Positions 4,530 through 54,013 of a DNA stretch of 64,000 bases are shown in pieces. The position numbers and the translations under genes were made by a program. The stretch is from positions 51,150,001 to 51,214,000 of the forward strand of contig CM060731.1 in NCBI GenBank assembly GCA_030704615.1, in the 5' to 3' direction. How positions within the stretch are numbered: the stretch's first letter is position 1; each line of letters opens with the position of its first letter. The stretch is from Takakia lepidozioides (lineage: Eukaryota; Plantae; Bryophyta). The notes under the pieces were generated by a model. It had not been told where the DNA came from and did not search any database. It saw only the letters and a list, made by a program, of their open reading frames with translations.

Positions 4530-6180
4530 AAATTGCTATTTATATATGTCCTAAGGACTCCTTAGAAACGCTCGAAAGACTCCTTAGAGCAAAAAAATAA
4601 AAAATAATAATTACTATTTATATTCGCCCTAAGGAATCCTTAGAGCCACTCTAAAAATTTCTTAGAATGAAAAAATAAATATATGTACATTGCTATTTAC
4701 ATTCGACTTAAGGACTCCTTAGAGCGAGAAATAGAAAAATATAAATTACTATTTATATTCGCCCTATGGAGTCTTTAAAGCGACTCTAAGAACTCCTTAG
4801 AGAAGGAAAATAGAAAAATATAAATTATTATTTATATTCGCCCTAATGACTCTTTAGAGCGGGAAAATGGGAAAATGTAAATTACTATTTATATTCACCC
4901 TACAGACTCCTTAGAGTCACTCTAAGAATTTCCTAGAACAAAATATATATATATATATATAGATAAATTATTATTTATATTTTCCCTAAAGACTCCTTAG
5001 AGCCACTCTACAGACTCCTGAGAGCGAGAAAATAGAAAAATATAAATTATTATTTACATTTGCCCTAAAGACTCCTTAGAGCAAAAAATAGAAAACTATA
5101 AATTACTATTTATATTTGCTCTTAGGACTCCTTAGGGCCGCTCTAAGGATTTCTTAGAGCAAATAAATAAATAAATAAAAATTGTTATTTATTTCTGTCC
5201 TAAGGATTTATATCCGCATTTGGGCGAATATAAGTAGCATTTTATATTTTTCTATTTTTTTACTCTAAGGAAAATTATGTAATAATTATAATTATAATAC
5301 TATTATATAATTATAATACTATTATGTATTATTATATTATTATTATTATATTATATAATACTTATTGTGTAATAATAATTATGTTATATATAATATTATG
5401 CGAATAATATTATATATTTAATATGATATACCAATTCAATCTAATGATGCAATAAGAAATCCTTAGAATGAATCTAAGAAACTCTTAGAGTGAATGTGTG
5501 TTTTTCTTTAATCACTCTAAAACATCCTTAGAGCGGCTTAGAGCGGCTCTAAGGGATCCTTAGAGCAAATGCAAATAGCATAGTTTATTCTGTTTTCTTG
5601 CTCTAAGTAATGCTTAGATCAAATGTGAATAGCCATTTAAATTTTTTTGTTTTCCCACTCTAATAAATCCTTAGAGTGGCTCTAAAGGATCCTTGGAGCA
5701 AATACAAATAGCAATTTAGCTTTTTCTGTTTCCCCGCTCTGAAAAATCCTTAGAGCGGCTCTAGTAAGGGATCCTTAGAGCGAATCTTTTTCTGTTTTCT
5801 TATTCTAAGTAATACTTAGATCGAATGTAAATAGCAATTTAGTTTTTTCTGTTTTTCCGCTCTAAAAAATCCCTAGAGCGGCTCTTAGAGCGAATACAAA
5901 TAGCAATTTAGCTTTTTCTGTTTTCCGTTGTATGAAATCCTTAGAGTGGCTTATAGCGGCTTTAAGGGATCCTTAGAACGAACATAAATAGCAATTAGCT
6001 TTTTCTAATTTCCCAATCTAACAAATCCTTACATTGGCTCTAACTTAAGATAACTTGGGATCCTTCTAATAAATGCAAAAAAATATTAAGGTTTATCTTC
6101 TTGGTCATGGTTGACTGTTTTGTTTTCCCGCTCTATTAGAACGGCTCTAAGGGATCCTTAGAATAAATGTAAAAAATATG
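4530..6180. repeat. Inverted arrays of ~60-80 bp subrepeats around an AT-rich core
   Basis: Left units resemble aaattactatttatattcgccctaaggactccttagagc (4530-5200). Right units are the reverse-complement form gctctaagggatccttagagcgaatacaaatagcaattt (5450-6180). A TA/TTA low-complexity core lies at 5270-5430. Confidence 0.8.
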
Positions 6181-7134: not shown

Positions 7135-7360
7135 GGTTTTTCTTCTTGGTCATGGTTGACTGTTGAGGCCGTATGGCACCCTTTGGGATTTAACTCTTTT
7201 TCCCCCTTTAATAATTCACCTATCAACAATTTAGTTATTTGGTTTAAAAAATGTGACCTTTTGGCTAAAATATATTAGGGTTTAGCCAGAACTTGTCGAC
7301 GCGGCCTTCTGTCTTGCTGAGAAGAAAAACTTGGCACTTAGCTGGCATCCTAATAATCGC

Positions 7361-9472
7361 ATGATGCAATGCACTTGGGCAGGCAGACAGGAAATGGGCA
7401 GTGGAGTGGTGCTGGGCGCTGGACCCTTGCAACTGATGGCTATCCCGGCTTCTCAGCTTGCACCAGACTTGAGACCCAAGCTGCCACAGGAGGGATTTTG
7501 GGTTGAGAATTGGTGGAACCCTCCTTGGGTGGAAGGGTTTTTTGAACCATGCAGCATGGGAGTGTTGGATCAAACACAGGTAAGTGGTAGCACCCCCACC
7601 GTCACCAGTGCCATTGAAAGAGGAGTAAGAGAGCAAGTGAAGAAGAACTCTTGTGGCAGCTATGGGGATGTGAGGACACTGTGCCAGGCAGGACAAGTGA
7701 AAGAGGCGGTGCACATTTTGAAGCAATCAGACATTCGGGCGGACTCCAATACTTACGTCTGTATCTTGCACGAGTGCACCAACATGAAAGGCCTGGCAGA
7801 GGGGAAGCAGGTGCACGCACACATGGTTGGAAGTGGATTCAAACCAAACCTGTTTCTACTCAATACCCTTGTCAACATGTATGCCAAGTGCGGGAGCGTG
7901 GTGGATGCACGCCAAGTATTTGACAAAATGCCTGAACGAAATGCATTTACGTGGACTATAATGATAGCAGGATATGCCAACCATGGGTGTGCTAGGGAGG
8001 CTTTTGAGATCTACGAGCATATGCAACGAGAAGGGGTGGCGCCTGATAGGGTCACCTTCATTTGTGTTCTCAATGCCTGTGCCAGTCTTGGAGCACTGGA
8101 AAAGGGCAGAAAGGTCCATCGTGACATCCTAAGAACTGGAATTGCGTCATATATAAATTTGGAGAATGCCCTTGTTGATATGTATGCCAAGTGTGGAAGC
8201 ATGAAGGATGCACGCCAAGTGTTTGGCAATATGGCTAGAAAAAATGTGGTCTCATGGAGTGCGATCATCGCAGGTTATGCTCAGCATGGGTGTGGGCGGG
8301 AGGCTTTCGAGATTTATGACCAAATGCAACTTGGGGGGGTGATGCCCAATGAAGTGACGTTCATTTGCGTTTTGAACGCCTGTGCCAGCCTAGGAGCCGT
8401 GGAAAGGGGCAAAGGTGTCCATGCCGACATCATAAAAGCTGGACTTGCATCATATGTAAACTTGGAGAATACCCTCGTCACCATGTATGCCAAATGCGGG
8501 AGCGTAATGGATGCTCGGCAATTGTTCGACAATATGACTGAGAGAAATGTGGTAACATGGAATGCCATGATCGGAGGATACTCTCAGCATGGGTGTGGTA
8601 GGGAGGTCGTCCAACTATTTGAGCAGATGGTACAGGAGGGCTTGAAGCCCAATGGTATAACCTTCATATCTCTTCTCTCTGCATGCAGCCATGCGGGTCT
8701 AGTGGATGAAGGCCTTCATTACTTTGATTCCATAAGCCAGATTCATGGGCTTGCTCCAACTGTGGAGCATTTTGGCTGCATGGTGGACTCGCTTGGCCGG
8801 TCAGGCCAATTGGATGATGCAGAAGACTTTATCAAAAACATGCCAATCAAACCAGACACTTCTGTGTGGAGGGCCTTGCTAGGTGCCTGCAGAGTTCATT
8901 GTGATGTGGAGGTTGCAGAACGTGCAACTAAAAGCATTGTGGAAAGTGATCCACAGCAAGCTTCAGCTTATGTGCTGCTGTCGAACATCTATGCTGCAGC
9001 CGGCAGGTGGGAAGATAAAGCAAAGGTGAGAAAATTGATGGAGAGCAGGGGTATCATTAAGGATGCAGGTCACAGCTTCATTGAGGCTAACAACCTGGTG
9101 CATACATTTGTGGGATGGGATGAATCGCATCCACGAATTAAGGAAATCCATGCCGAGCTGAAGAGATTGTCTGGTCTGATGAAGGAGGCAGGCTATGTTC
9201 CTGACACACGATATGTATTGCATGATTTGGAGGAGGAGGAAAAGGAATTCTCTCTTTGCCATCACAGTGAGAGGCTGGCTATTGCTTTTGGGCTCATCAG
9301 CACCCACCCTCAGACACCTATTCGCATCTTCAAGAACCTTCGTGTGTGTGGTGACTGCCACACAGCCACCAAGTTCATCTCGAAGATTGTTGGGCGAGCA
9401 ATAGTTGTGCGTGATGCCAACCGCTTTCACCACTTCCAAGATGGGGTTTGTTCTTGTGGGGATTACTGGTGA
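7361..9472 (+). CDS. PLS-class PPR protein with E1-E2-DYW domain (organellar C-to-U RNA editing factor)
   Basis: Intronless ORF with first ATG at 7361. Motif order is L-S-P-L-S-P-L-S-P2-L2-S2, then E1, E2 and a DYW domain with PG-box variant KDAGHSFIE, HSERLAIAFG, CGDC and terminal CSCGDYW. Confidence 0.97.
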   Translation: MMQCTWAGRQEMGSGVVLGAGPLQLMAIPASQLAPDLRPKLPQEGFWVENWWNPPWVEGFFEPCSMGVLDQTQVSGSTPTVTSAIERGVREQVKKNSCGSYGDVRTLCQAGQVKEAVHILKQSDIRADSNTYVCILHECTNMKGLAEGKQVHAHMVGSGFKPNLFLLNTLVNMYAKCGSVVDARQVFDKMPERNAFTWTIMIAGYANHGCAREAFEIYEHMQREGVAPDRVTFICVLNACASLGALEKGRKVHRDILRTGIASYINLENALVDMYAKCGSMKDARQVFGNMARKNVVSWSAIIAGYAQHGCGREAFEIYDQMQLGGVMPNEVTFICVLNACASLGAVERGKGVHADIIKAGLASYVNLENTLVTMYAKCGSVMDARQLFDNMTERNVVTWNAMIGGYSQHGCGREVVQLFEQMVQEGLKPNGITFISLLSACSHAGLVDEGLHYFDSISQIHGLAPTVEHFGCMVDSLGRSGQLDDAEDFIKNMPIKPDTSVWRALLGACRVHCDVEVAERATKSIVESDPQQASAYVLLSNIYAAAGRWEDKAKVRKLMESRGIIKDAGHSFIEANNLVHTFVGWDESHPRIKEIHAELKRLSGLMKEAGYVPDTRYVLHDLEEEEKEFSLCHHSERLAIAFGLISTHPQTPIRIFKNLRVCGDCHTATKFISKIVGRAIVVRDANRFHHFQDGVCSCGDYW

Positions 9473-20971: not shown

Positions 20972-23900
20972 GCTTGCGGGAGCGAATCGCCCTCGCAAGC
21001 CACGCACTCCGAAGGAAAAAGGTAGGAATCAAGGTCCTGCAAGGCAAAGTGCCAGACTGAAGACGATGACTGAAGACTGAAGACTACGATTTTGCATGAG
21101 GGCTCTTCTGAGGACGATGAGGACGATCCACTCCTCCCACGCCAATGCGAGGCGAGTGCGTCGTCGGCGGATGCCACGGCAAGCCGAGGAGAACATGCCC
21201 ATGCTCATGTCGCAGGACAAAAATGCCCATCATCTACACTACGAACACCTTCTCCGTCTGTGAGTTATAGTTCTTCACAATGACCATGATTCTAATTATG
21301 TATGTTTTTGGTAAAATCACGAAGAGATAGGGTATGTCTGTCAAGACAGGGAAGTTGGACAATGCAGGGGTCAGCCAAGGCACAATCATAAATGATTTCC
21401 ACTAGACAAGTTGAAGTGCCAAAGGCATGATGTCAGGCCAATGTAGACTTCAGGTGTGTTCAAATTCTTTGCCCCATGAAACCAACGTCCTAGTACTAAG
21501 CTACAATGGCTACTTATGCACCCAGAATATCAGTAAAACTTGGAGGGATACTTCTCATGGACCCATCAGCTTTGTCCATTTGAATTCTTGCTATGGATTT
21601 CAAGAACACCCCATACCTAAGAGGGCTCAAAAATGTACTGGGAGGACATCATTGGGGCCAATCAAATTTGGGAGATTTACTGCCCAAGATCATACTGAGT
21701 TTTGGGTAATCTTGTCTTTACAAATGATATGTGCTTCCAGTTTGTTTTGCCTGAATTCAAGGATTTGCTGCTTGCTGCCTATATGTATGTGTAATCACCC
21801 ACATTGTACTGGGGGAATTTCTTTTTAGGGCAAGCACAAGCGCACTGGATCCACGATCCCTGCTGCTAGCAATGGAGATGGCGCCCACAAGAACGCAGGA
21901 GGTGGCCCTAACTCTCCCAACATTGTGGGTTCTGTGCCACCAGTACCCCCACCTTATTATGGTATGCCTCAGTACCCACAGTCTGGCACTCAGTATGGTC
22001 AGGGTCAATATGGTGCTCCTCCATATGGGCAGTATAGCCAGTATCCTCCTCCACCATATTTGCCACCCCCTAATAGCTATGGGGGTGGTAGGCCACCGGA
22101 ATATCCTCCTGCTTATGGACAGTATGGCCAATATGGTCCTCGGTCTTCTGGCCAACAACCATGGCCACCAGTCCCTACTTGGCAGGATCCTGCTTTGAAT
22201 TCTCCTGAGCGCACGGAGGTCTCTGAACGAGGGGAGGGTGTCGTTTCAAAGAATGATAGAACCAATGCTTTAAGGAGGGCTAATAGCTCAGCCAAAATTG
22301 AAGCTGCCAAGGTCAAGGAAGAGAGAATAGCTGCAGGTCTTCTTCCCACGGTGATTTTGACGAACCTCAAAGGAGCCCCGTATGGTCAGACCCGGAATGT
22401 ATGGCACGCTGCCCTTAAAGGACATGCTTATCGCAAGCTAGATCGTTCCCTTGCCATCAACAACCAACCTGATGAAGTTGTATACGAAATCAGAGATCAC
22501 CTGGCTAAGCTATTTTCATATACACCGCACGAGTTAAAAGACTTCCACCTAAAACAAACAATTGGCAGAATAATGAAGAACCAGCGTTATGAAGCACACA
22601 CTGCGTGGTTGGGTGGTAAGGGGAAACCCATTACTGTATCTGATGAGGTATGGAACAAGCTTGTAAGTTACTGGCAGACAGAGGTGTTCCACAAAGTGTC
22701 GGGCAACATGAAGAAGGCAAATGGTGCAATTCTGAATCCTACCAAGACTGGCCGTGGTGGGAAGGCAATGGTGGAAGCATGCTTGGTAAGTGGCATCATC
22801 ACGACTCTGTATTTTGTTCCTCATTGAATTGCTATGTGTATATAGTCAGCCCTCACATTGCTTACTGACTTGTGGCATGGGTTTGTTTGTGGCATGGATT
22901 AATTTGTAGGAAACACTATCAGGGTGCCCTCCTACATTATATGAAATTCAAGAGGGTTCAGTGTCACGGTTGTCAGCTAGGAGTGACAGGCGGGTAAGTG
23001 TGTTTTCCACGTTTGCTAGAGTGGTTGCTGCATCATAGGTTGCTAGGGTTTTTTTCACGGCTTTTGGCCTAGGTTTTCTTTCCAATGGTTGTTCATGCTA
23101 GGTTTTTTTGGGTTTGATTCATACTTGGGCAAGTTTTCATGGATTGGCAGGAGGGAAGTCTCGCATATTCTACAGTAGTTGGCAGGATGGATGGCTTGGA
23201 CAAACTGGTGGAATCACAAGGACGTGACATGGCAGAATTAAAATTACAGATGCAGAGTATGATTGAGTACCAGAAAGCCATTGTGACGAGATTGGGGATT
23301 AATCTACCAGGCGCAGGACCAGTGACATCTACGATGGATACGTCTGCTGTGACAGTATCAAAATGTTTGGAATCCCAATTTCAGACGGTAACTGGTGCTC
23401 ACTCTAAGCCCTTATGTCTTCCTGTCACTGATGATCTTTTGAATTTGACCGAGCAGCAGCAGGATACAGGGAAGGCCAGCTGTGAGGTACACGTGGAAAT
23501 TCAGCCCTTGCCACGTACAAAGGCAGTAGCAGTCCAGGGGGCAATGGTGACAGAGCGGCCGGGCACACCGGATTCTGGTATGCAGGTATGTGGGAGTTTA
23601 GATGGGGAGGAAGATGCAGATGGGGACAAAACAAACAAGCAGGTTGCTTTAATTTCTCCTGCTCACATGTTGAAGCCAAATGTCAGTTTACTTCCTGGAC
23701 CAACGAGGAAACATTTACTAATTCTGGACTTAAATGGTCTGTTATGTGAATCTTTTCATTCTGCTAATGGGCCTGCATCCCTTCCCAAAGGTTTTGTGGG
23801 GAAGATGTGTGGCAAGAAGATGGTAGTTTTGAGACCACGCTGTTATGACTTTTTGCAAAAGTGTTTTGAACACTTTGAGGTGGCGGTGTGGTCTTGTTGC

Positions 23901-24691
23901 CAAGCTCGCAACTTCTTCCCAATGGTGGACTATATTTTTGCAGCCCACACTAACCTGGTTTTCCAGTGAGATGCCCTTCACTGTGACGAGGATCCAGTCC
24001 TCCCATGCCGTAAGGGGTCTGATTCAAAGCCATTATATTTCAAGAACTTGTCTACAGTGTGGGCAGACTGGCCAGAATGGACTTATGAGGACACTGTTCT
24101 TGTTGACGACACACCAAGAAAGGCGGCAAACAATCCTCCCTTCAGTGGGATTTTTCCAGAGCCATGGAAGGTGCAACCAGATTCACCAACTGATGAGTAT
24201 CTAACAGAGGTGTTGTGGCCTTTCTTGTGGAAGGCATCGAAAGCTGCCAGTATTCCCAAGTTTTTGGAGTCTCAGCCTGTTTTCGGACAACAACCATACA
24301 ACATTGCTACTGTACCCTCTCTTTAACTCGCAAATGTTGAGTGTCCTAGTCGTGTGTATGTCATGGGTTTTCACATCGTGTTCTTTTTTGTGTGGAGTTG
24401 GGATCACAGTTCAGGGTGGGTGACGAGGTTCGGTTGTTGGATGTGAACTCCAAACGCAAGAAATGTGGAGTAGGGCTGATTGTTGCTCTTCAAGGTGCTG
24501 TGGTGGGTTACGGGTACCCTGCTGTGCCCCTTGATTATGCCTGTGTGTACATCAAAGAGGCATGTGTCAGTAACACCCCTCTACCATATGTGAATGGTGT
24601 TAGGAAACAGACCGAGTTGGGGCAGGTGGTTGGCCAGACAACACTTTGGAGTCTAAAGTTACTGAAACTTATGGAGCTGCGGAAGGGATAG
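20972..24691 (+). pseudogene. Multi-exon CACTA TnpA-like gene: Ptta/En-Spm domain, FCP1/NIF HAD-like domain, C-terminal Tnp1-like domain; one in-frame stop
   Basis: VWNKLVSYWQTEVFHKVSGNMKKANG...TGRGG is Transposase_24-like, followed by a small exon at ~22910-22993. The HAD-like region reads KHLLILDLNGLL, LRPRCYDFLQKCFEHFEVAVWS, FQ*DALHC (TGA at 23967), YFKNLSTVW and TVLVDDTPRKAANNP. 24412-24691 ends PLPY...TELGQVVGQTTLW. Confidence 0.75.
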
Positions 24692-42704: not shown

Positions 42705-43090
42705 GGTTTGGACGTTTGCACGGACTCTCACCAGCTTCACTCGGCTGCAATACGTTTCCTGGGCTTGTGAGGTGCCTTGTTTGTCTCCTCTTTTCTTGTT
42801 GATGTCCAACTGTGTTATGGCTGTCTTTGCTGTTTTGCTCGATTGCTTTTGGTGTTACGCATTACCGTCCACTCTGATTAGCCATTCAAGATTTTAGTGG
42901 ACGTATGAGAGTTTCTTTAGACTTTCAAGTGCTTACTGTCGATTGATGCTTTCTGCAGAGTACTTCCGCAGGACCCCAACTTCCATGTCACCAACATCAT
43001 GCATGTGTTCCCTCATCTTGGTTCGTGTCCATGTTTTTGTTAGTGGAAGAACTAAAATGTGGTACGGGTGGTCTTCGGGTTAATCCAGAT

Positions 43091-43516
43091 ATGACGTCGC
43101 ATCGCCGTGCAATGGGAAAGTGCATGAATGTCACAGCTTTTGCCTTGGTGACGATGGCTCTTATCGCAGAGGCTCATGCAAAAGACGAATCCTCCGTTCA
43201 AATCATCAACCAGGTGGGGGGTACTATCCAATTACACTGCAGGTCCAAAGACAACGATCTTGGATGGAAGACCCTTAATGATGGAACGAACTGGTCATTC
43301 TCATTTGGAGCCAACATCTTTGGAAACACACTTTTCTGGTGTGATTTCATCTGGGGTGCCCATACTCGGGGGTTCACTGTCTGGCATGGGGATGGGTTTT
43401 GGCACAATCATTATATGCCCTGCCATCAGTGCGTTTGGTATGTGTTTGCCGAGGGATTTTATCGGATGCAGGAAAACGCCGATGTATCTCCTCAGTTCGT
43501 CTATGCATGGAACTGA
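43091..43516 (+). CDS. S-protein homologue (plant self-incompatibility S1 / SPH family), secreted
   Basis: Signal peptide MNVTAFALVTMALIAEAHA, then LHCRSKDNDLG, WSFSFGANIFGNTLFWCDF and CHQCVW (four Cys), with C-terminal YAWN. The start could be 43091, 43112 or 43124. Confidence 0.9.
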   Translation: MTSHRRAMGKCMNVTAFALVTMALIAEAHAKDESSVQIINQVGGTIQLHCRSKDNDLGWKTLNDGTNWSFSFGANIFGNTLFWCDFIWGAHTRGFTVWHGDGFWHNHYMPCHQCVWYVFAEGFYRMQENADVSPQFVYAWN

Positions 43517-47510: not shown

Positions 47511-50500
47511 CTAGAGAAGAAACCCAGGCAGGGTCAAAAAGCTGAAGTTGTGCCAAAATAGGCAAAGCCAAGTATTGTACGTGATGTGGTCCTCTTTTGC
47601 AGTCCTGTAGCTCATGGTTCTGCAGTTCAATGTCGGCCAATACATCATATAACTGTATGTCAATACTTGCATGTGAGTGTCAACGCAGGTAATTATGTTG
47701 AACAGTGTTATGTTAATCGAAAATTCATGTAGTGATAGAGCTCTGCTGAAACCAGTTAAACTAAAACTGGCCGAAAGAGATCTTCTTACGATCTTACATT
47801 CTGGTTATGCCAGACGACCATCTCACTTTCTCTGAGACCCTGGTGCAACAAAAGATTATATCAGCTTGAACATTTTGAGGATATGACTAATGTGAATGTC
47901 TAATGAGACCCACCTTGCTTCACCTCTCTAGAGATAATATCTAGTCTCGAAATTGCACCGCCTTTCAATCCTAAATTATCAAGCTCACAAAAGAGATCAG
48001 TGATAAGATAAACTCTCGTTTCTGTGAACAGTCCACCACGGGTGATAGATAATGGAAACCTTAGCGCTACAGGGGCAGTTGGGGAGCCTAGTGGCCATAT
48101 GGATTAGAAAATCTTGATCTTAATCCGCTCTGCAAGGGTTCATTCTATAATTCACACAGAGAAAATGGTGATGCCTGTACCGGTAAGCCAGACAGCCAGA
48201 CAGGACGGCACCGAAAGCTTCGCAGATGAGTTGTGGAGTAGAGTATGATGAGTCCTTCATGACAACATAGTGCGTGAACAGTGGATCCATGAGAAAGATG
48301 AATGCCATTATTTTCCGAGCTAGATCATCTCCAAATATCATTGGAAACGTTCTTCTTCCAATCTTGGTATCACCAGCCACGTCTCTGAAGTCCTACATCC
48401 ATCCAAAAAAAAAATAGTCATTTTTGTCCAGGCTGTAAGTGATTATTACTCAAAGACAGTCGAAGCGGGGCTGTTGCAGGAATCACTGACCTGACTCCAA
48501 TGGTGGTTTCCAGCTTGGGCTGCTCTTGTCAGTGCCCACCACAGCAACTTGTCTGTTCCCACATTTATCAACTGTAAGAAGATATAGAGTCTGTACAAAT
48601 GATATTATGAGCTGATTGGCTTAAACTTTTGCACATTTAGAATTTTTTGGAACAGGATACGTACACGACTAGATCTTCAGGGACCGCTCTAGGACATGGC
48701 CCTCCCAATATTGCTGCAAGGCGAAGCTAGTACGCGAAAGTTTAGAGTGTACAAACTTAAGCTGTTCGCGAGCTTTTCATAGATTCATTACACCAGGTAC
48801 TAGGCGTAACTAATCCATGTACCCATTGCCTCTGGGCATAACGCCAAACATAACAGTTGGGAAATCTTGGCAGGGCCTCTTGGTAGTGCGATAGTGTACC
48901 TGTCAGAGGATTTGCAATACTTATAGACACAGTGGTAAGTGTGATAGTGCCGACACACATTGCAAGACTTTTCCCCACACCTGACGAATTCCCCTGCTGC
49001 AGGCCTAGAAGGTCCCAAAGGACTATTCCCTGCCACATCAATGTCCAGGGCAGCACTCCCATCTGACGCAAGCACGAGACCACAACCCGGGTTGTCACTG
49101 TCATGACCACTGAAACAGCTGAAGCTTCAGTACACAATCCATTACCAGATGATATCTCAGGACACCCACGTTGCAGACTCAGTATCTCTAGCGGTAAGAC
49201 TTTTCAATCATTGGAAACAAATTCAGATGTAGGCACTCCTAAAATTAAAAGATGCTACTATGCCTAGCTGACACTTATAACTCAGTTGAGGAAACAATAA
49301 ATTGCCTTTATAATCCAGTTAGTGTGAAGGCTTCAACTATTTTAAACTGATCTGTAAACCCGAAACTCTTACATTCATGGCCCGCATTAGTCTATGTCGT
49401 ATGTGTACCCTGTTTTCACTAGAAATATCAGCGAGCTCTTCCGATTGATTGAGACGACTTCAGGATCTCCCTATATGCTAGTAAAGAGATTCGCGTAGAA
49501 ACCTTCTCTCCTAATAATATCTATTTCAACAGAATTATGAATTCTTACATGCCAGCCTACGAAGCCGAAGAGTAAGTTTATCAAGATGTAGCGACTGAGA
49601 CACCCTTCCCGAGAAACTAAACCCGAAGCGACGGGGCGCCATGGCTTGTCGATCAGGTCATCCGGTCCACCAACGTACTGATTGGCAAGATTGAAGGTGT
49701 AGAGGTACAGCCACGAATACAAAACTTCCTTACTAAACGTTTCTGCAGCATGAATCCAAAATTGTCGATCTAATCTGTACACAAACGAAGCCTTATGTGA
49801 GAGGATCGATTGTTCAAGGGTGCAGTCAAAAGCCTTGGAATAGTGTCACTACCCTTTTAGTGCAGGAAGGAGAAATAGGGTGCGCTCTCACCATCACTAT
49901 GCACTTGCAGCTATCAGGACTATCACTGTACGCTATGAAATTTCAGGAGTACCCCACTGCATAGATATGATTACCAAGTACCACAGGGTTAATTTGTCCG
50001 AATGGCCCAGTATGCTTGTGCAGCTCCCTTATACTTCTATATTGTAAGGACCAGCTTCCGTGACATCTGAAAGGCGCGATGAGCTGCAGCTGCAGATATT
50101 ACTCCAAGGTAGTACGTATATATTCAGATACAGACTAAGACGTATCCCGTAGTTACATTAGATAGAAGTAACATTAAGGACACCTCTTTGTAATTGTATA
50201 TCACGTACACTTAGTCTCTTAAACACATGCAATGTGCTTTCAAAACCTAATCGAGGACAAAAAGTCTTGCCCGTGAGATTGTGGACTTACCCCTGCATAT
50301 GGGGTTGTATTGCTAGAATGTTGATGCCAACACACCAAAAGGGAATCATCGCAGAAGGTATGTCGTTGCATGTTGCCAAGTAGATTATCTTCATCTCCTT
50401 TTGTACAAGCTTGGACATAGCTGCTATGGGGTGGTCCTCTCCCACTATCGGCCCGATGGTGCCTCCTGTGCTTACCTCCCTGAGTAATGTCTTCCGTGCA

Positions 50501-50589
50501 GATGGTAAGGGATCACCTCCCTCGACAGGCATGGGATTCATAGAGCGCATCTCAAAAGATTCTTCATTCGGACCTGCTCGGATCGTCAT
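47511..50589 (-). CDS. UbiA-superfamily membrane enzyme of microbial terpene-cyclase type (6 exons, 356 aa)
   Basis: Exons 50589-50291, 49774-49549, 49062-48900, 48552-48491, 48392-48181 and 47619-47511 are all GT-AG and phase-compatible (1071 nt, no internal stop). Motifs: YTFNLANQYVGGPDDLIDKPWRPVASG, GVLPWTLMWQ, QDFRDVAGDTKIGRRTFP and RTAKEDHITY. Confidence 0.88.
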
Positions 50590-51176
50590 TTGACAAGTCC
50601 GCTTCTACAATACACACATGAGCATTCCATCAGTCCCACTTGCTCTGAATCCCTTAGAGCTGTTCCTTGTTTGGGGGGCAAGAAGTAATTTTTCCAATCC
50701 TGAATAGTAAAGTAAATGCACTTGTAAGGAAGTGTTGTTACAAGCCACTAAAACCGGCTGAAGCAAGGTCAACCCGAGGAGGTGATCAAGTGTTATGTCA
50801 AGCGGTGATCAGAGTTATGAAATCTTGAGACAAATTTGAGATTTTACCATATACCATGGAGCAATGAGAGTGAAAAGCCATGACACATAAATTTGTATAT
50901 ATTTTTGGGGTTTCAAGTGACTTGGTGAGAGCATGTATTTTAGTCCTCAGACTTCAAATTACAGCCGTCTTGTCTTGATCTCGGCCTCATATACATCTCT
51001 TAAGATTCCTCTCAGATTCATTCTGTGTTATGGCTGCTCCAGTAACAATATCGTTTGAGACCAGTACACAATTCATTTTTGAGTGAAGTCCAACTGCTAG
51101 ATTGATAAGCCATCCCAGGCCGTTGTGGCTGTCATATTAGGCTGTGTCGGATGTGTCCCGTAGTAGACAACTATAA

Positions 51177-51750
51177 AGAAATGAAACGGTGCTTTAGAAC
51201 GTCCGCGGAAAGCTCATAGAGCTTATGGGACAAAATGGAAATGAAATGAAATGAAATGGTGCTTTATAACGTCCGCGGAAAGCTCGTAGAGCTTATGGGA
51301 CAAAATGGAAGAAAACATGAGAGAGGAACAAATCCAGAAACCACAATTAATGTTCTAGCGATTGTCTAAGGGTGAAGGCCTCGTGTAGGTAGGCTGCCAC
51401 GCATTTTTGATCCTCATAGTGAAAGACATCAGTGAGAGTTTGGGTTCCACTGAATAAACAGTGAAATCTCCCACGGATCTCGTAGTATAGAGGGCAGTAG
51501 AAGAAGAAGTGTTCTTCAGTTTCAATTTCCTTGCTGCGCCCTATGCAAGCTGGACATAGGCGGTCCTCCCGTTGCAGGTTTTCCCATCTGCCAGTCTCTA
51601 TCCGTAGGTTGTGGGAACCCACCCTGAACCGCCCCAATGCCCTCAAGAGGGAAGGAGATAAGGAGATAATGGAAGAAAACATGAGAGGAAACAAAACCAG
51701 AGCCAAGAATAAGAACTATTGCTCGAGTGATTGTGTAAGGGTGAAGGCCT
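51177..51750 (-). mobile_element. 3' end of a non-LTR retrotransposon with (ATTTC)n tail
   Basis: RFRVGSHNLRIETGRW...DRLCPAC...ETEEHFFFYCPLYYEIR is the C-terminal zinc finger of a LINE ORF2. The 3' terminus is duplicated with gaaat repeats, and a second 3'-end fragment lies at 51670-51750. Confidence 0.85.
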
Positions 51751-54013
51751 TGTGCTGAAGAAGAAGAGTATAACTCTCGTTTGCAATAAAAGGACTAGCG
51801 AAATGCCGAACAACAAGATAGTCAATGGCAGACTCTGGACCTCGCTCTCAACATCTGTCACTGTTCTAGAGATCAGAGACTGTACTGAGAAGCTTAAAAT
51901 ATATCACATGTATTCATTAGTGGAATTGGCCAATAAATTCAGAGCTGCGTACTTAACCATCCCAATTCGATGGTCAAAAGACACCTGCATGTTACCTAGA
52001 TTATAATGGAACTGAAAATCCAGTTCAAAATGTTAGACCTAAAGAAAATCTTTTAGTTAATCTTGTGTAGCACATATCTTTATTGACCCGTTTAACGGAA
52101 AACATGACAACAAGAACATTAAGGTGGCAAACGATATGCCTCTTGGGTTGGTTGTGGTCAAGTGAGTAAGGGTCTCCTGCTACTGCACTAAGGCTCTTAC
52201 AAACAGATGAATTGCAAGTGGCTTCGCGGGCAAACAGCATTAGTACGAGTGACTGTATTGATAAACAAAATTTTCAGTACTTGTCATCAACAAGCATTTC
52301 CTACGATAGGATCCATCAGATATAATGGCTACTCACTACTACTGACCTTCCACCTAGCACGGCACCGATATATCACTCGAAATCATTATATAGCGTTTTC
52401 TTGTTTTCTTACGTGAGATATTCGGCAACAGCAAGTGCGCTTCGCGAAGTAAACCGGTCCCAATCTGGTGTATTGTTGTTTCTGAAGGCTATGGTCGTCC
52501 CGGTGCAATAAACCCCTAGTTGCAGAGTCCCCTACCTTCAACCCACTACCACTGCAACTGATCACAGCTGCCATGGTCCTCCAACCAACTGATGACCCCC
52601 CCTTGCAGACTTGGTATATTACGACTATCAAGTCTACCACACACAACTTTGCCGAGTGTGAGAGAGAACAACGAGAGACACTCGTCTGTTCGAGCAATGC
52701 GTAAGACCGACCATACACTATAATGATCCTGTCAGGGATCCTTTGTACTTCCACAAAACTCTGTAGACTCTACATGTATATATTTCGTGTCGTGGACGCC
52801 AAATCGCTGTGCAGTTCATAGAGGCGCGGTACTCAACTTTAGATGCTGCCATTCTTACAGTAGGTTTTGTAGCGGGTGTTGTATACAACTTGGGCGATAG
52901 ATGCATGGCCATGGCCATAGATTATTGCAATTTACTGCTAGTGGTTGGCAATCTATTTTTGATAAATTCCTAGTAATATTGCGGTAGAATTCCCAGACTT
53001 GCAATAGTTGGTTGTGGACTTTGGGAGTGCAATTGAGAGGGGTGATGGAGTTAGGGAAGGAGTTTGATTGCATCTTGTAAATGAGCTGACCATGTCCATA
53101 AACATATATGTACATTGGAACCCACTAGCACAATAGCTGCTAAAATGAGCCACCCTAAACATTCCCGACAAAGCAATGTTTCCAGATTCACTCCAAGTTT
53201 GCCGGTACATTCAATTAGGATAATAAGGGAAAGAGAAATGGGTGGTTTGAATTCATTCTGCTTAGAATATGCTTTGCAAGAATCAAACCTACCCTCAGGA
53301 AAATTTAAAATTTGTTGTCTTATTCAGGATATTTTTTAGATTAATAATACTTTGTAATTGTAGTACTTTATGCCATGATCCATCTAGGTGGTATTGGGTT
53401 CAAATCCTGGCAATTATAGCCACCAATTTGCAGGATGGGTTAAATCGTTAAATCTTCACCTTGGAAGATGAGGTAGTCTATTCACCCTCCTTTTTGGTGG
53501 GCCGCCCCAAAAACAGATTTTACTTCCATGAAGTCCTACCAGCTCCCCTGAATCCATAGATATGAGCCTTTACTCTCCTACATCTATCCAGAGTAAGAAT
53601 TCTGAGCAAATTCACCATTGAAATTGCGAAATAATAACAAAACAATATGGTTGTCTTTTCATCCCACACAAAATATGTTCCGGCAAAAACAAGTTTGATC
53701 ATGGTATCATTGAAATTTTTCATTTCTGAATGCGCTCCAGATTCACAATCTCGGGCACCGCAAGATGCTCTCGCCAAGTTTCAGATCAAAATACCTAAAT
53801 TTGCTGAAGGGGTGCTTTGTATGTGAAAGCAGAGGGTATTTTCAATTTCTAAATGCACTAGGGGACAAACACCATCACGTGCTTCCAACTTTGTAGATAT
53901 GATTCCTTCTATAGAACGCTAACAAAGTGATTGTATTTCATATACTTCAACCAAAAGATACTTATATATCCTTGGGAGACTAGACCAGAACTTTCCAAGA
54001 TCCGACAACTATA

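Follow-up and report, generated by a model that had tools for sequence, protein, structure and literature searches.

The window, the whole 64,000-nt stretch of Takakia lepidozioides DNA analysed here, carries on its minus strand an intron-containing gene for a UbiA-type membrane protein. A sequence-only reading of this DNA had proposed six exons joined across five GT-AG introns. The first of these exons was placed at 50589-50291, the others coincide with coding exons 3–7 of Table 1, and the introns between them measure 516, 486, 347, 98, and 561 nt. The join comprises 1071 nt and encodes 356 aa plus a stop codon, with NQYVGGPDD, DKPWRP, QDFRDVAGD, GRRTFP, and DHITY all present in the stop-free frame, as had been stated. 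RNA supported the six exons, whereas the protein proved to be incomplete, because an upstream coding exon had been missed. The full gene model has seven coding exons with 1248 nt, encodes 415 aa, and contains 0 internal stops.

Table 1. Features of the UbiA-type gene, with positions numbered from the first letter of the window
Feature	Position	Strand	Evidence
Coding exon 1, 54 codons; basic, Ser/Thr-rich, acid-poor N-terminus	52413-52574	-	RNA loose ends, open frame
Intron 1 (GT-AG, 1808 nt), which harbours a 66-nt tandem duplication and what is probably a LINE remnant	50605-52412	-	RNA
Coding exon 2, 314 nt (exon 1 of the sequence-only reading plus 15 nt); linker, first membrane helix	50291-50604	-	RNA
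Coding exon 3; motif I, KPWRP loop	49549-49774	-	RNA, Pfam UbiA match
Motif I N-x3-G-x3-D, NQYVGGPDD, residues 190-198 of 415	49657-49683	-	Definition in PMC9835599
Coding exon 4; membrane helices, conserved Lys retained, microbial-family Asn/Trp/Asn gone	48900-49062	-	RNA, alignment
Coding exon 5, 62 nt; plant-clade Arg...NHHW segment and Gln of motif II	48491-48552	-	RNA
Coding exon 6; remainder of motif II, GRRTFP	48181-48392	-	RNA, Pfam UbiA match
Motif II QDFRDVAGD, residues 309-317	48392-48369 (DFRDVAGD part)	-	Bridges the exon 5/6 joint, RNA-supported
Coding exon 7; C-terminal R...D-x2-TY motif (DHITY), stop codon	47511-47619	-	RNA
Proximal 3′ UTR, to the limit of the RNA contig match	47422-47510	-	RNA

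RNA-type contigs from two public runs under one species label covered the exons only and skipped all five downstream introns. The runs are likely RNA, since their contigs are intron-free; their nature was otherwise guessed. A single contig of 2211 nt reached across all six downstream exons. The RNA joints were exact at introns 2–4, and exact except for a few replaced letters at the last two introns. The main deep contigs differed from the window by about 7% (about 93% identity), which indicates that they originate in a paralogue or a close relative. The support for introns 2–6 comes through these paralogue contigs only, and that for intron 1 through a window-identical contig. The gene is real and transcribed, and the description of it as a spliced plant gene was correct. 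Gene structure, splicing, and motifs are established. Alternative exon 4/5 boundaries gave products of 352, 388, or 392 aa that were likewise stop-free, so RNA was needed to fix the model; the RNA joints ruled out these variants and picked the 356/415-aa model.

In coding exon 1, the ATG stands in the context ACCATGG and the donor reads CAC/GTAAGA. All RNA contigs continued beyond 50604, where the window shows an AG acceptor, and their loose letters matched 52413-52451, the end of the open frame from the ATG at 52574. The loose-end consensus of two contigs in run X1 was a column-wise mix of the window and paralogue exon ends at 30/30 letters. The agreement expected for such a mix is 0.683 and that reported was 0.68; the runner-up site in the window reached 26/30. 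One X1 contig at the exon 1/2 junction was identical to the window over 110 nt, indicating that the copy in the window itself is transcribed and spliced at intron 1. A tblastn search of the window with liverwort N-termini did not find exon 1, which was located by the RNA loose ends. The first 60 aa contain 10 Ser/Thr, 10 Arg/Lys, and 3 Asp/Glu, with Ala at position 2, and the N-terminal extension of liverwort-type homologues has a similar composition. By composition, this N-terminus resembles a plastid transit peptide, and it could also be a mitochondrial targeting sequence.

Two further contigs were observed in run X1. Record 4 (window 48263-49765), a third transcript, diverges further: large stretches inside it are deleted or replaced, and its exon 5 differs by 4 nt. 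It is probably a decayed paralogue. Record 2 (window 47591-47873) is a low-depth contig over intron 6 sequence with 15 differences, and represents either unspliced RNA or DNA from another copy. Within intron 1, an ORF of 119 aa at 51347-51706 (-) shows a Cys/His arrangement reminiscent of the zinc finger at the C-terminal end of LINE reverse transcriptases. It had no Pfam match and is flanked by a 57-nt imperfect direct repeat; the region is probably a truncated retroelement. The 66-nt tandem duplication in the same intron (51175-51310) is 94% identical.

Elsewhere in the window, an intact single-exon S-protein homologue (43025-43516, +; Pfam Self-incomp_S1, E 6e-24) lies about 4 kb downstream of the 3′-end of the gene. 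An intact DYW-type PPR gene (7331-9472, +) has best natural matches of 55–68% identity and clusters with seed-free plant sequences with weak support. An ORF with an NIF/FCP1-like phosphatase domain (23139-23969, +) lies beside a weak En/Spm transposase match (21925-22827, +); the two may belong to a CACTA element that captured cargo. Among the long ORFs of the window, neither a P450 nor a prenyl synthase was found. The UbiA-type gene is integrated in its host, as seen from its introns, its plant neighbour genes, and its GC3 of 0.53 (0.51–0.52 in host genes). Contaminating microbial DNA was rejected as a source, since the window contains the PPR gene, the S-protein homologue, and plant retroelements, and its codon GC matches.

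Relatives and distribution

Searches were run exon by exon, and full-length questions were answered with database homologues. A search of 1.84 billion representatives with exon 3 returned two matches at 63–67% identity, followed by a gap to matches of mostly 35–50%. The close group consists of several paralogues of the liverwort Calypogeia fissa and two Logan contigs, with proteins of 444–452 aa and a similar N-terminal extension. CAM6099353.1, CAM6092244.1, and their paralogues from C. fissa belong to the same clade as the window gene, with 39–66% identity exon by exon, and share with the window protein this extension and an NHHW-x-QD segment. They differ from it in that their genes have no introns and in having Gly for the Asp that stands before the last Asp of motif I in the window. 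The distribution of this plant clade was patchy: no members were found from Sphagnum, Ceratodon, Diphasiastrum, or Ginkgo, all of which are in the collection, at the sensitivity of a word-indexed search.

Two C. fissa copies lie near a plant P450, and the two gene–P450 pairs represent one duplicated segment. Co-transfer of this P450 was considered and rejected, since its motifs suggest an ordinary plant P450 of the CYP71 clan. In one C. fissa copy (L006, 9580-10897), a frameshift close to the N-terminus breaks the gene in two, and gene fragments in inverted orientation (L004, 6667-7218) lie close to another copy. The Calypogeia family shows birth and decay of its members.

The next matches were bacterial (Streptomyces, Crossiella, Sorangium, and Aureispira) and fungal (Basidiomycota, Ascomycota, Mucoromycota, and Glomeromycota), together with dinoflagellate matches. 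Nearly all of them read NQ-x2-G-x-E-E-D and QD-x2-D-x3-D. The closest homologues outside the bryophytes are bacterial and fungal, which bears out the proposed microbial affinity. At the exon level, the closest of these matches are bacterial proteins that resemble UbiA-type terpene synthases (UTS), and a polyprenyl synthase and a P450 often stand next to their genes. A polyprenyl synthase gene adjoins four of the six bacterial relatives examined, and a P450 is also nearby in two, an arrangement typical of terpene clusters. In contrast to these bacterial genes, the window gene has no operon or adjacent prenyl synthase, is spliced, and is apparently plastid-targeted.

Proteins with UTS motifs were also observed in the dinoflagellates Symbiodinium and Effrenium (P0009 and P0039) and in early-diverging fungi of the Glomeromycota and Mucoromycota (P0089, P0162, and P0030), groups that include liverwort symbionts. 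No report of these dinoflagellate and fungal proteins was met in the literature searched. In a Polyangiales genome (L009, around 5001-5666), a UTS-like domain stands at the end of a 1222-aa open frame, a possible multi-domain fusion. The plasmid CP123774.1 (L069), labelled Bacillus subtilis, carries a UTS-like gene with a polyprenyl synthase, an IDI, and an FAD monooxygenase; its taxon label looks doubtful, the source being a mixed culture.

Family placement

UTS are defined by N-x3-(G/A)-x3-D with QD-x2-D-x3-D, and prenyltransferases by N-D-x2-D-x3-D with D-x3-D (PMC9835599). Fma-TC, EriG, and Tps1A carry the UTS motif pair, and mutation of Asp abolishes their product (PMC9835599). The window protein has the first motif as NQYVGGPDD and the second, Q-D-x2-D-x3-D, as QDFRDVAGD, so the recognition of a UTS signature in the sequence-only reading agrees with the published definition. 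It departs from a stricter form of motif I, NQ-x2-(G/A)-x2-ED (PMC13483135), as the window reads DD and liverwort-type proteins read GD or AD. It also departs from the plant HPT/HST motifs NQ-x2-D-x3-D and KD-x2-D-x2-GD, having Gly where the central Asp would stand and Q in the position of K.

Coding exons 3 and 6 each matched Pfam UbiA (PF01040) at E ~3e-4, under the cut-off as fragments, and full-length homologues scored 65 bits against a cut-off of 34.2. The NCBIfam scores of a full-length homologue were 37 for ChlG (TIGR02056; cut-off 436), 16.6 for homogentisate phytyltransferase (PRK12887; cut-off 226), and 25 for MenA (cut-off 102), and the DGGGPS model was also far under its cut-off. 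In a comparison of 61 UTS-like microbial proteins with 21 primary UbiA-type rows, approximately 14 positions beyond the motifs that are common in the former and rare in the latter were kept in the window protein, from the first helix to the C-terminal D..TY. The kept residues include Q212, G215, F207, R241, W265, Q331, R344, R357 (P0128 numbering), and the C-terminal D..TY; the position of G215 is Asp in 95% of the 21 primary rows.

In the phylogenetic trees, the window was represented by two exons entered separately. The trees contained neither experimentally characterised UTS (EriG, Fma-TC, and Tps1A) nor plant HPT, HST, COQ2, and COX10; the UTS label of the clade therefore rests on motifs and gene neighbours. 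The window exons fell within the plant clade with a support of 100. The plant clade grouped with the UTS-like proteins and apart from BchG, DGGGPS, UbiA, MenA, and CyoE, with SH-aLRT support of 91 and 96 in quick PMSF trees and 89.5/98 in the LG tree. It arose at a basal fork without clear order, on a long branch with a stem of 1.0–1.5 changes per site. AU tests were performed on a smaller LG tree with 5000 replicates, and the constrained trees came out of fast searches, a setup that favours rejection. They rejected the union of the plant clade with BchG (p 0.022), with UbiA+CyoE (p 0.002), and with DGGGPS. The union with E. coli MenA, a single long branch, was not rejected (p 0.17), nor was any of three candidate donors. 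The expected grouping with microbial UTS-motif proteins, apart from the sampled primary UbiA enzymes, was thus recovered, while the AU test left the union with MenA standing. We regard the family placement as established.

The fungal UTS (Fma-TC, EriG, and Tps1A/Tps2A; PMC9835599) share with the window protein the motif pair, the UbiA domain, and the lack of a canonical TPS domain. The identity of the window protein to the fungal members found is approximately 25–35%. It differs from fungal UTS in its plastid-type N-terminal extension, in D-K-P for N-K-P, in lacking the Glu that precedes the final Asp of motif I, in an NHHW segment that replaces T-I-H-A, and in its land-plant host. Bacterial UbiA-type diterpene synthases have been described (Yang 2017 and Alsup 2025, as cited in PMC13483135). 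UTS have been recorded from fungi, bacteria, sponges, and now red algae (bioRxiv 10.64898/2026.10.28.762581). The red algal Laurencia UTS of that report and the sponge AcUbiA1 (PMC13483135) are likewise encoded by eukaryotes and lie outside the primary UbiA clades. For the Laurencia UTS, acquisition from outside the lineage was proposed, and activity was found in N. benthamiana (bioRxiv 10.64898/2026.10.28.762581). The Laurencia genes stand in clusters with genes for IDS or haloperoxidase, and activity has been shown for the Laurencia and sponge enzymes, whereas the window gene is known from sequence and RNA.

The microbial terpene synthase-like (MTPSL) proteins of non-seed plants are soluble class I enzymes with DDxxD/NSE motifs. 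The window protein is an unrelated integral membrane protein, and its family is not retrieved by TPS/MTPSL profile searches. Surveys of plant terpene synthases use TPS and MTPSL profiles and would miss the UbiA-type family. The MTPSL provide a precedent for acquired microbial terpene synthases in seed-free plants (PMC12513842). No report of a land-plant UTS was found in the literature searched, which covered few subscription papers; the family may already be included, without a name, in the supplementary lists of the survey of gene transfer into bryophytes (PMC12513842).

Active-site changes and rival explanations

The AlphaFold model of the Calypogeia homologue P0002, used as a proxy, showed the UbiA fold with a pLDDT of 84, which establishes the fold of a close homologue. 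In Foldseek, the top 15 matches of P0002 were membrane prenyltransferases. The TM-score of the model was 0.83 to an ascomycete UbiA cluster vs approximately 0.6 to solved primary enzymes, and an Atlas feature search also returned fungal clusters.

In motif I, a Glu precedes the last Asp in 98% of the microbial rows; the plant clade has Asp (window) or Gly/Ala (liverwort-type) in its place. The plant clade has also lost N273, W284, and N288 (P0128 numbering), and the hydrophobic helix of microbial proteins is replaced in it by an invariant Arg...NHHW segment. The changed residues probably line the cavity. Their possible effects are a different product, quenching of the cation by water, or a new site for a polar acceptor. 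Since four microbial-family residues are lost in the plant clade, the chemistry may have shifted, and this remodelling of the pocket is the main reason why the terpene synthase reading is not put higher. A lesion by a compensated frameshift in exon 5, whose shifted frame reads ETTIGV like the microbial segment, was considered and rejected, because all liverwort-type homologues read NHHW-M-QD in frame.

The lost family residues and the invariant Arg...NHHW segment, together with the long stem branch of the plant clade, also fit a protein of UTS ancestry that re-evolved into a two-substrate prenyltransferase. In that case, the Arg and His-His-Trp preceding motif II would serve as a binding site for an acceptor in the plastid, polar or aromatic, such as a phenolic acid or a bibenzyl. 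The plant aromatic prenyltransferases are plastid UbiA proteins, which also favours such a reversion. However, all other UTS-specific positions are retained, among them the C-terminal D..TY and the Gly that replaces the second Asp in motif I, and primary prenyltransferases use N-D-x2-D-x3-D (PMC9835599). We consider this reversion possible but unlikely. A vertical history, with the gene as a fast-evolving branch of an inherited plant prenyltransferase (HPT, HST, ChlG, or MenA) and its UTS likeness due to convergence or long-branch attraction, is far less credible, and we give it very little weight. The long branches, the unrejected union with MenA, a tree built without plant HPT and HST, and the predicted transit peptide would suit it. 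The best non-plant matches, however, are all microbial and UTS-like, about 15 UTS-specific residues are shared along the whole length, HMM scores to the primary families reach 5–25% of the cut-offs, and the Calypogeia copies are intronless.

It is rather improbable that the copy in the window is a weakly used, drifting duplicate and that the working enzyme is the paralogue behind the deep contigs. The window-identical contig had a depth of 7.8 vs approximately 180 for the paralogue in X1 and was absent from X2, although contig depth is a poor measure, and in a subset of the window–paralogue differences 25 codons had an amino-acid change vs 10 that were silent. Against drift stand the open frame of 415 codons, the canonical splice sites, both motifs in whole form, and the spliced transcript, and the excess of amino-acid changes fits diversification of the product equally well. 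Slightly less probable again is a synthase that is not a cyclase, which would ionise the diphosphate without cyclisation and yield an acyclic hydrocarbon or alcohol of the geranylgeraniol, geranyllinalool, or farnesene type. In its favour, the metal-binding motifs are intact, and the residues that probably line the cavity have become polar and might hold water; the characterised UTS, on the other hand, mostly give cyclic bisabolene, bergamotene, cyathadiene, or elisabethatriene.

Proposed function, origin, and significance

Our preferred reading, held with moderate confidence, is that the gene encodes a horizontally acquired membrane terpene synthase of the plastid that probably uses GGPP. With acyclic products included, the prediction of a terpene synthase is somewhat firmer, and we regard it as likely. 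A horizontal origin as such is highly probable.

The mechanism proposed here was inferred from the UbiA and UTS literature. The protein would be imported into the plastid and inserted into the membrane with the UbiA fold. Motif I (Asn and Asp) and motif II (three Asp) would bind Mg2+ and the diphosphate of the prenyl diphosphate, which in the plastid compartment would most likely be GGPP (or GPP). Loss of diphosphate would give an allylic cation that is cyclised or quenched in a membrane-buried cavity without a second substrate. The released terpene skeleton would probably be tailored by P450s encoded elsewhere.

In this proposal, a UTS gene of microbial origin was domesticated in bryophytes, having gained a plastid-targeting exon, with six introns in the Takakia lineage. 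It may have entered a bryophyte ancestor once, or one lineage from which it spread from plant to plant. The transfer would have been followed by gain of the targeting exon and by duplication, and then by intron gain in Takakia or intron loss in Calypogeia. We put forward, more tentatively, a third class of terpene-scaffold enzyme for land plants, as yet without a report: a UbiA-type synthase of plastid membranes that goes back to one early bryophyte acquisition from a microbe, was retained in a few liverworts and an early-branching moss, and has a remodelled site with a new skeleton or chemistry.

Liverworts and some mosses contain many terpenoids without known enzymes; UbiA-type synthases have filled gaps of this kind in red algae and fungi. 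With Takakia as its host, the gene is common to an early-branching moss and leafy liverworts. The surprise of the finding is lessened by the recent sponge and red algal UTS reports and by the frequent transfer of microbial genes into bryophytes. The land-plant clade, with its predicted plastid targeting, is a small and directly testable set of candidates, including approximately five Calypogeia genes. Its altered pocket may also shed light on how enzymes of the UbiA type change from cyclisation to prenyl transfer and back. If activity is confirmed, the gene would represent a further land-plant route to terpenes, through a family so far reported from microbes, sponges, and red algae.
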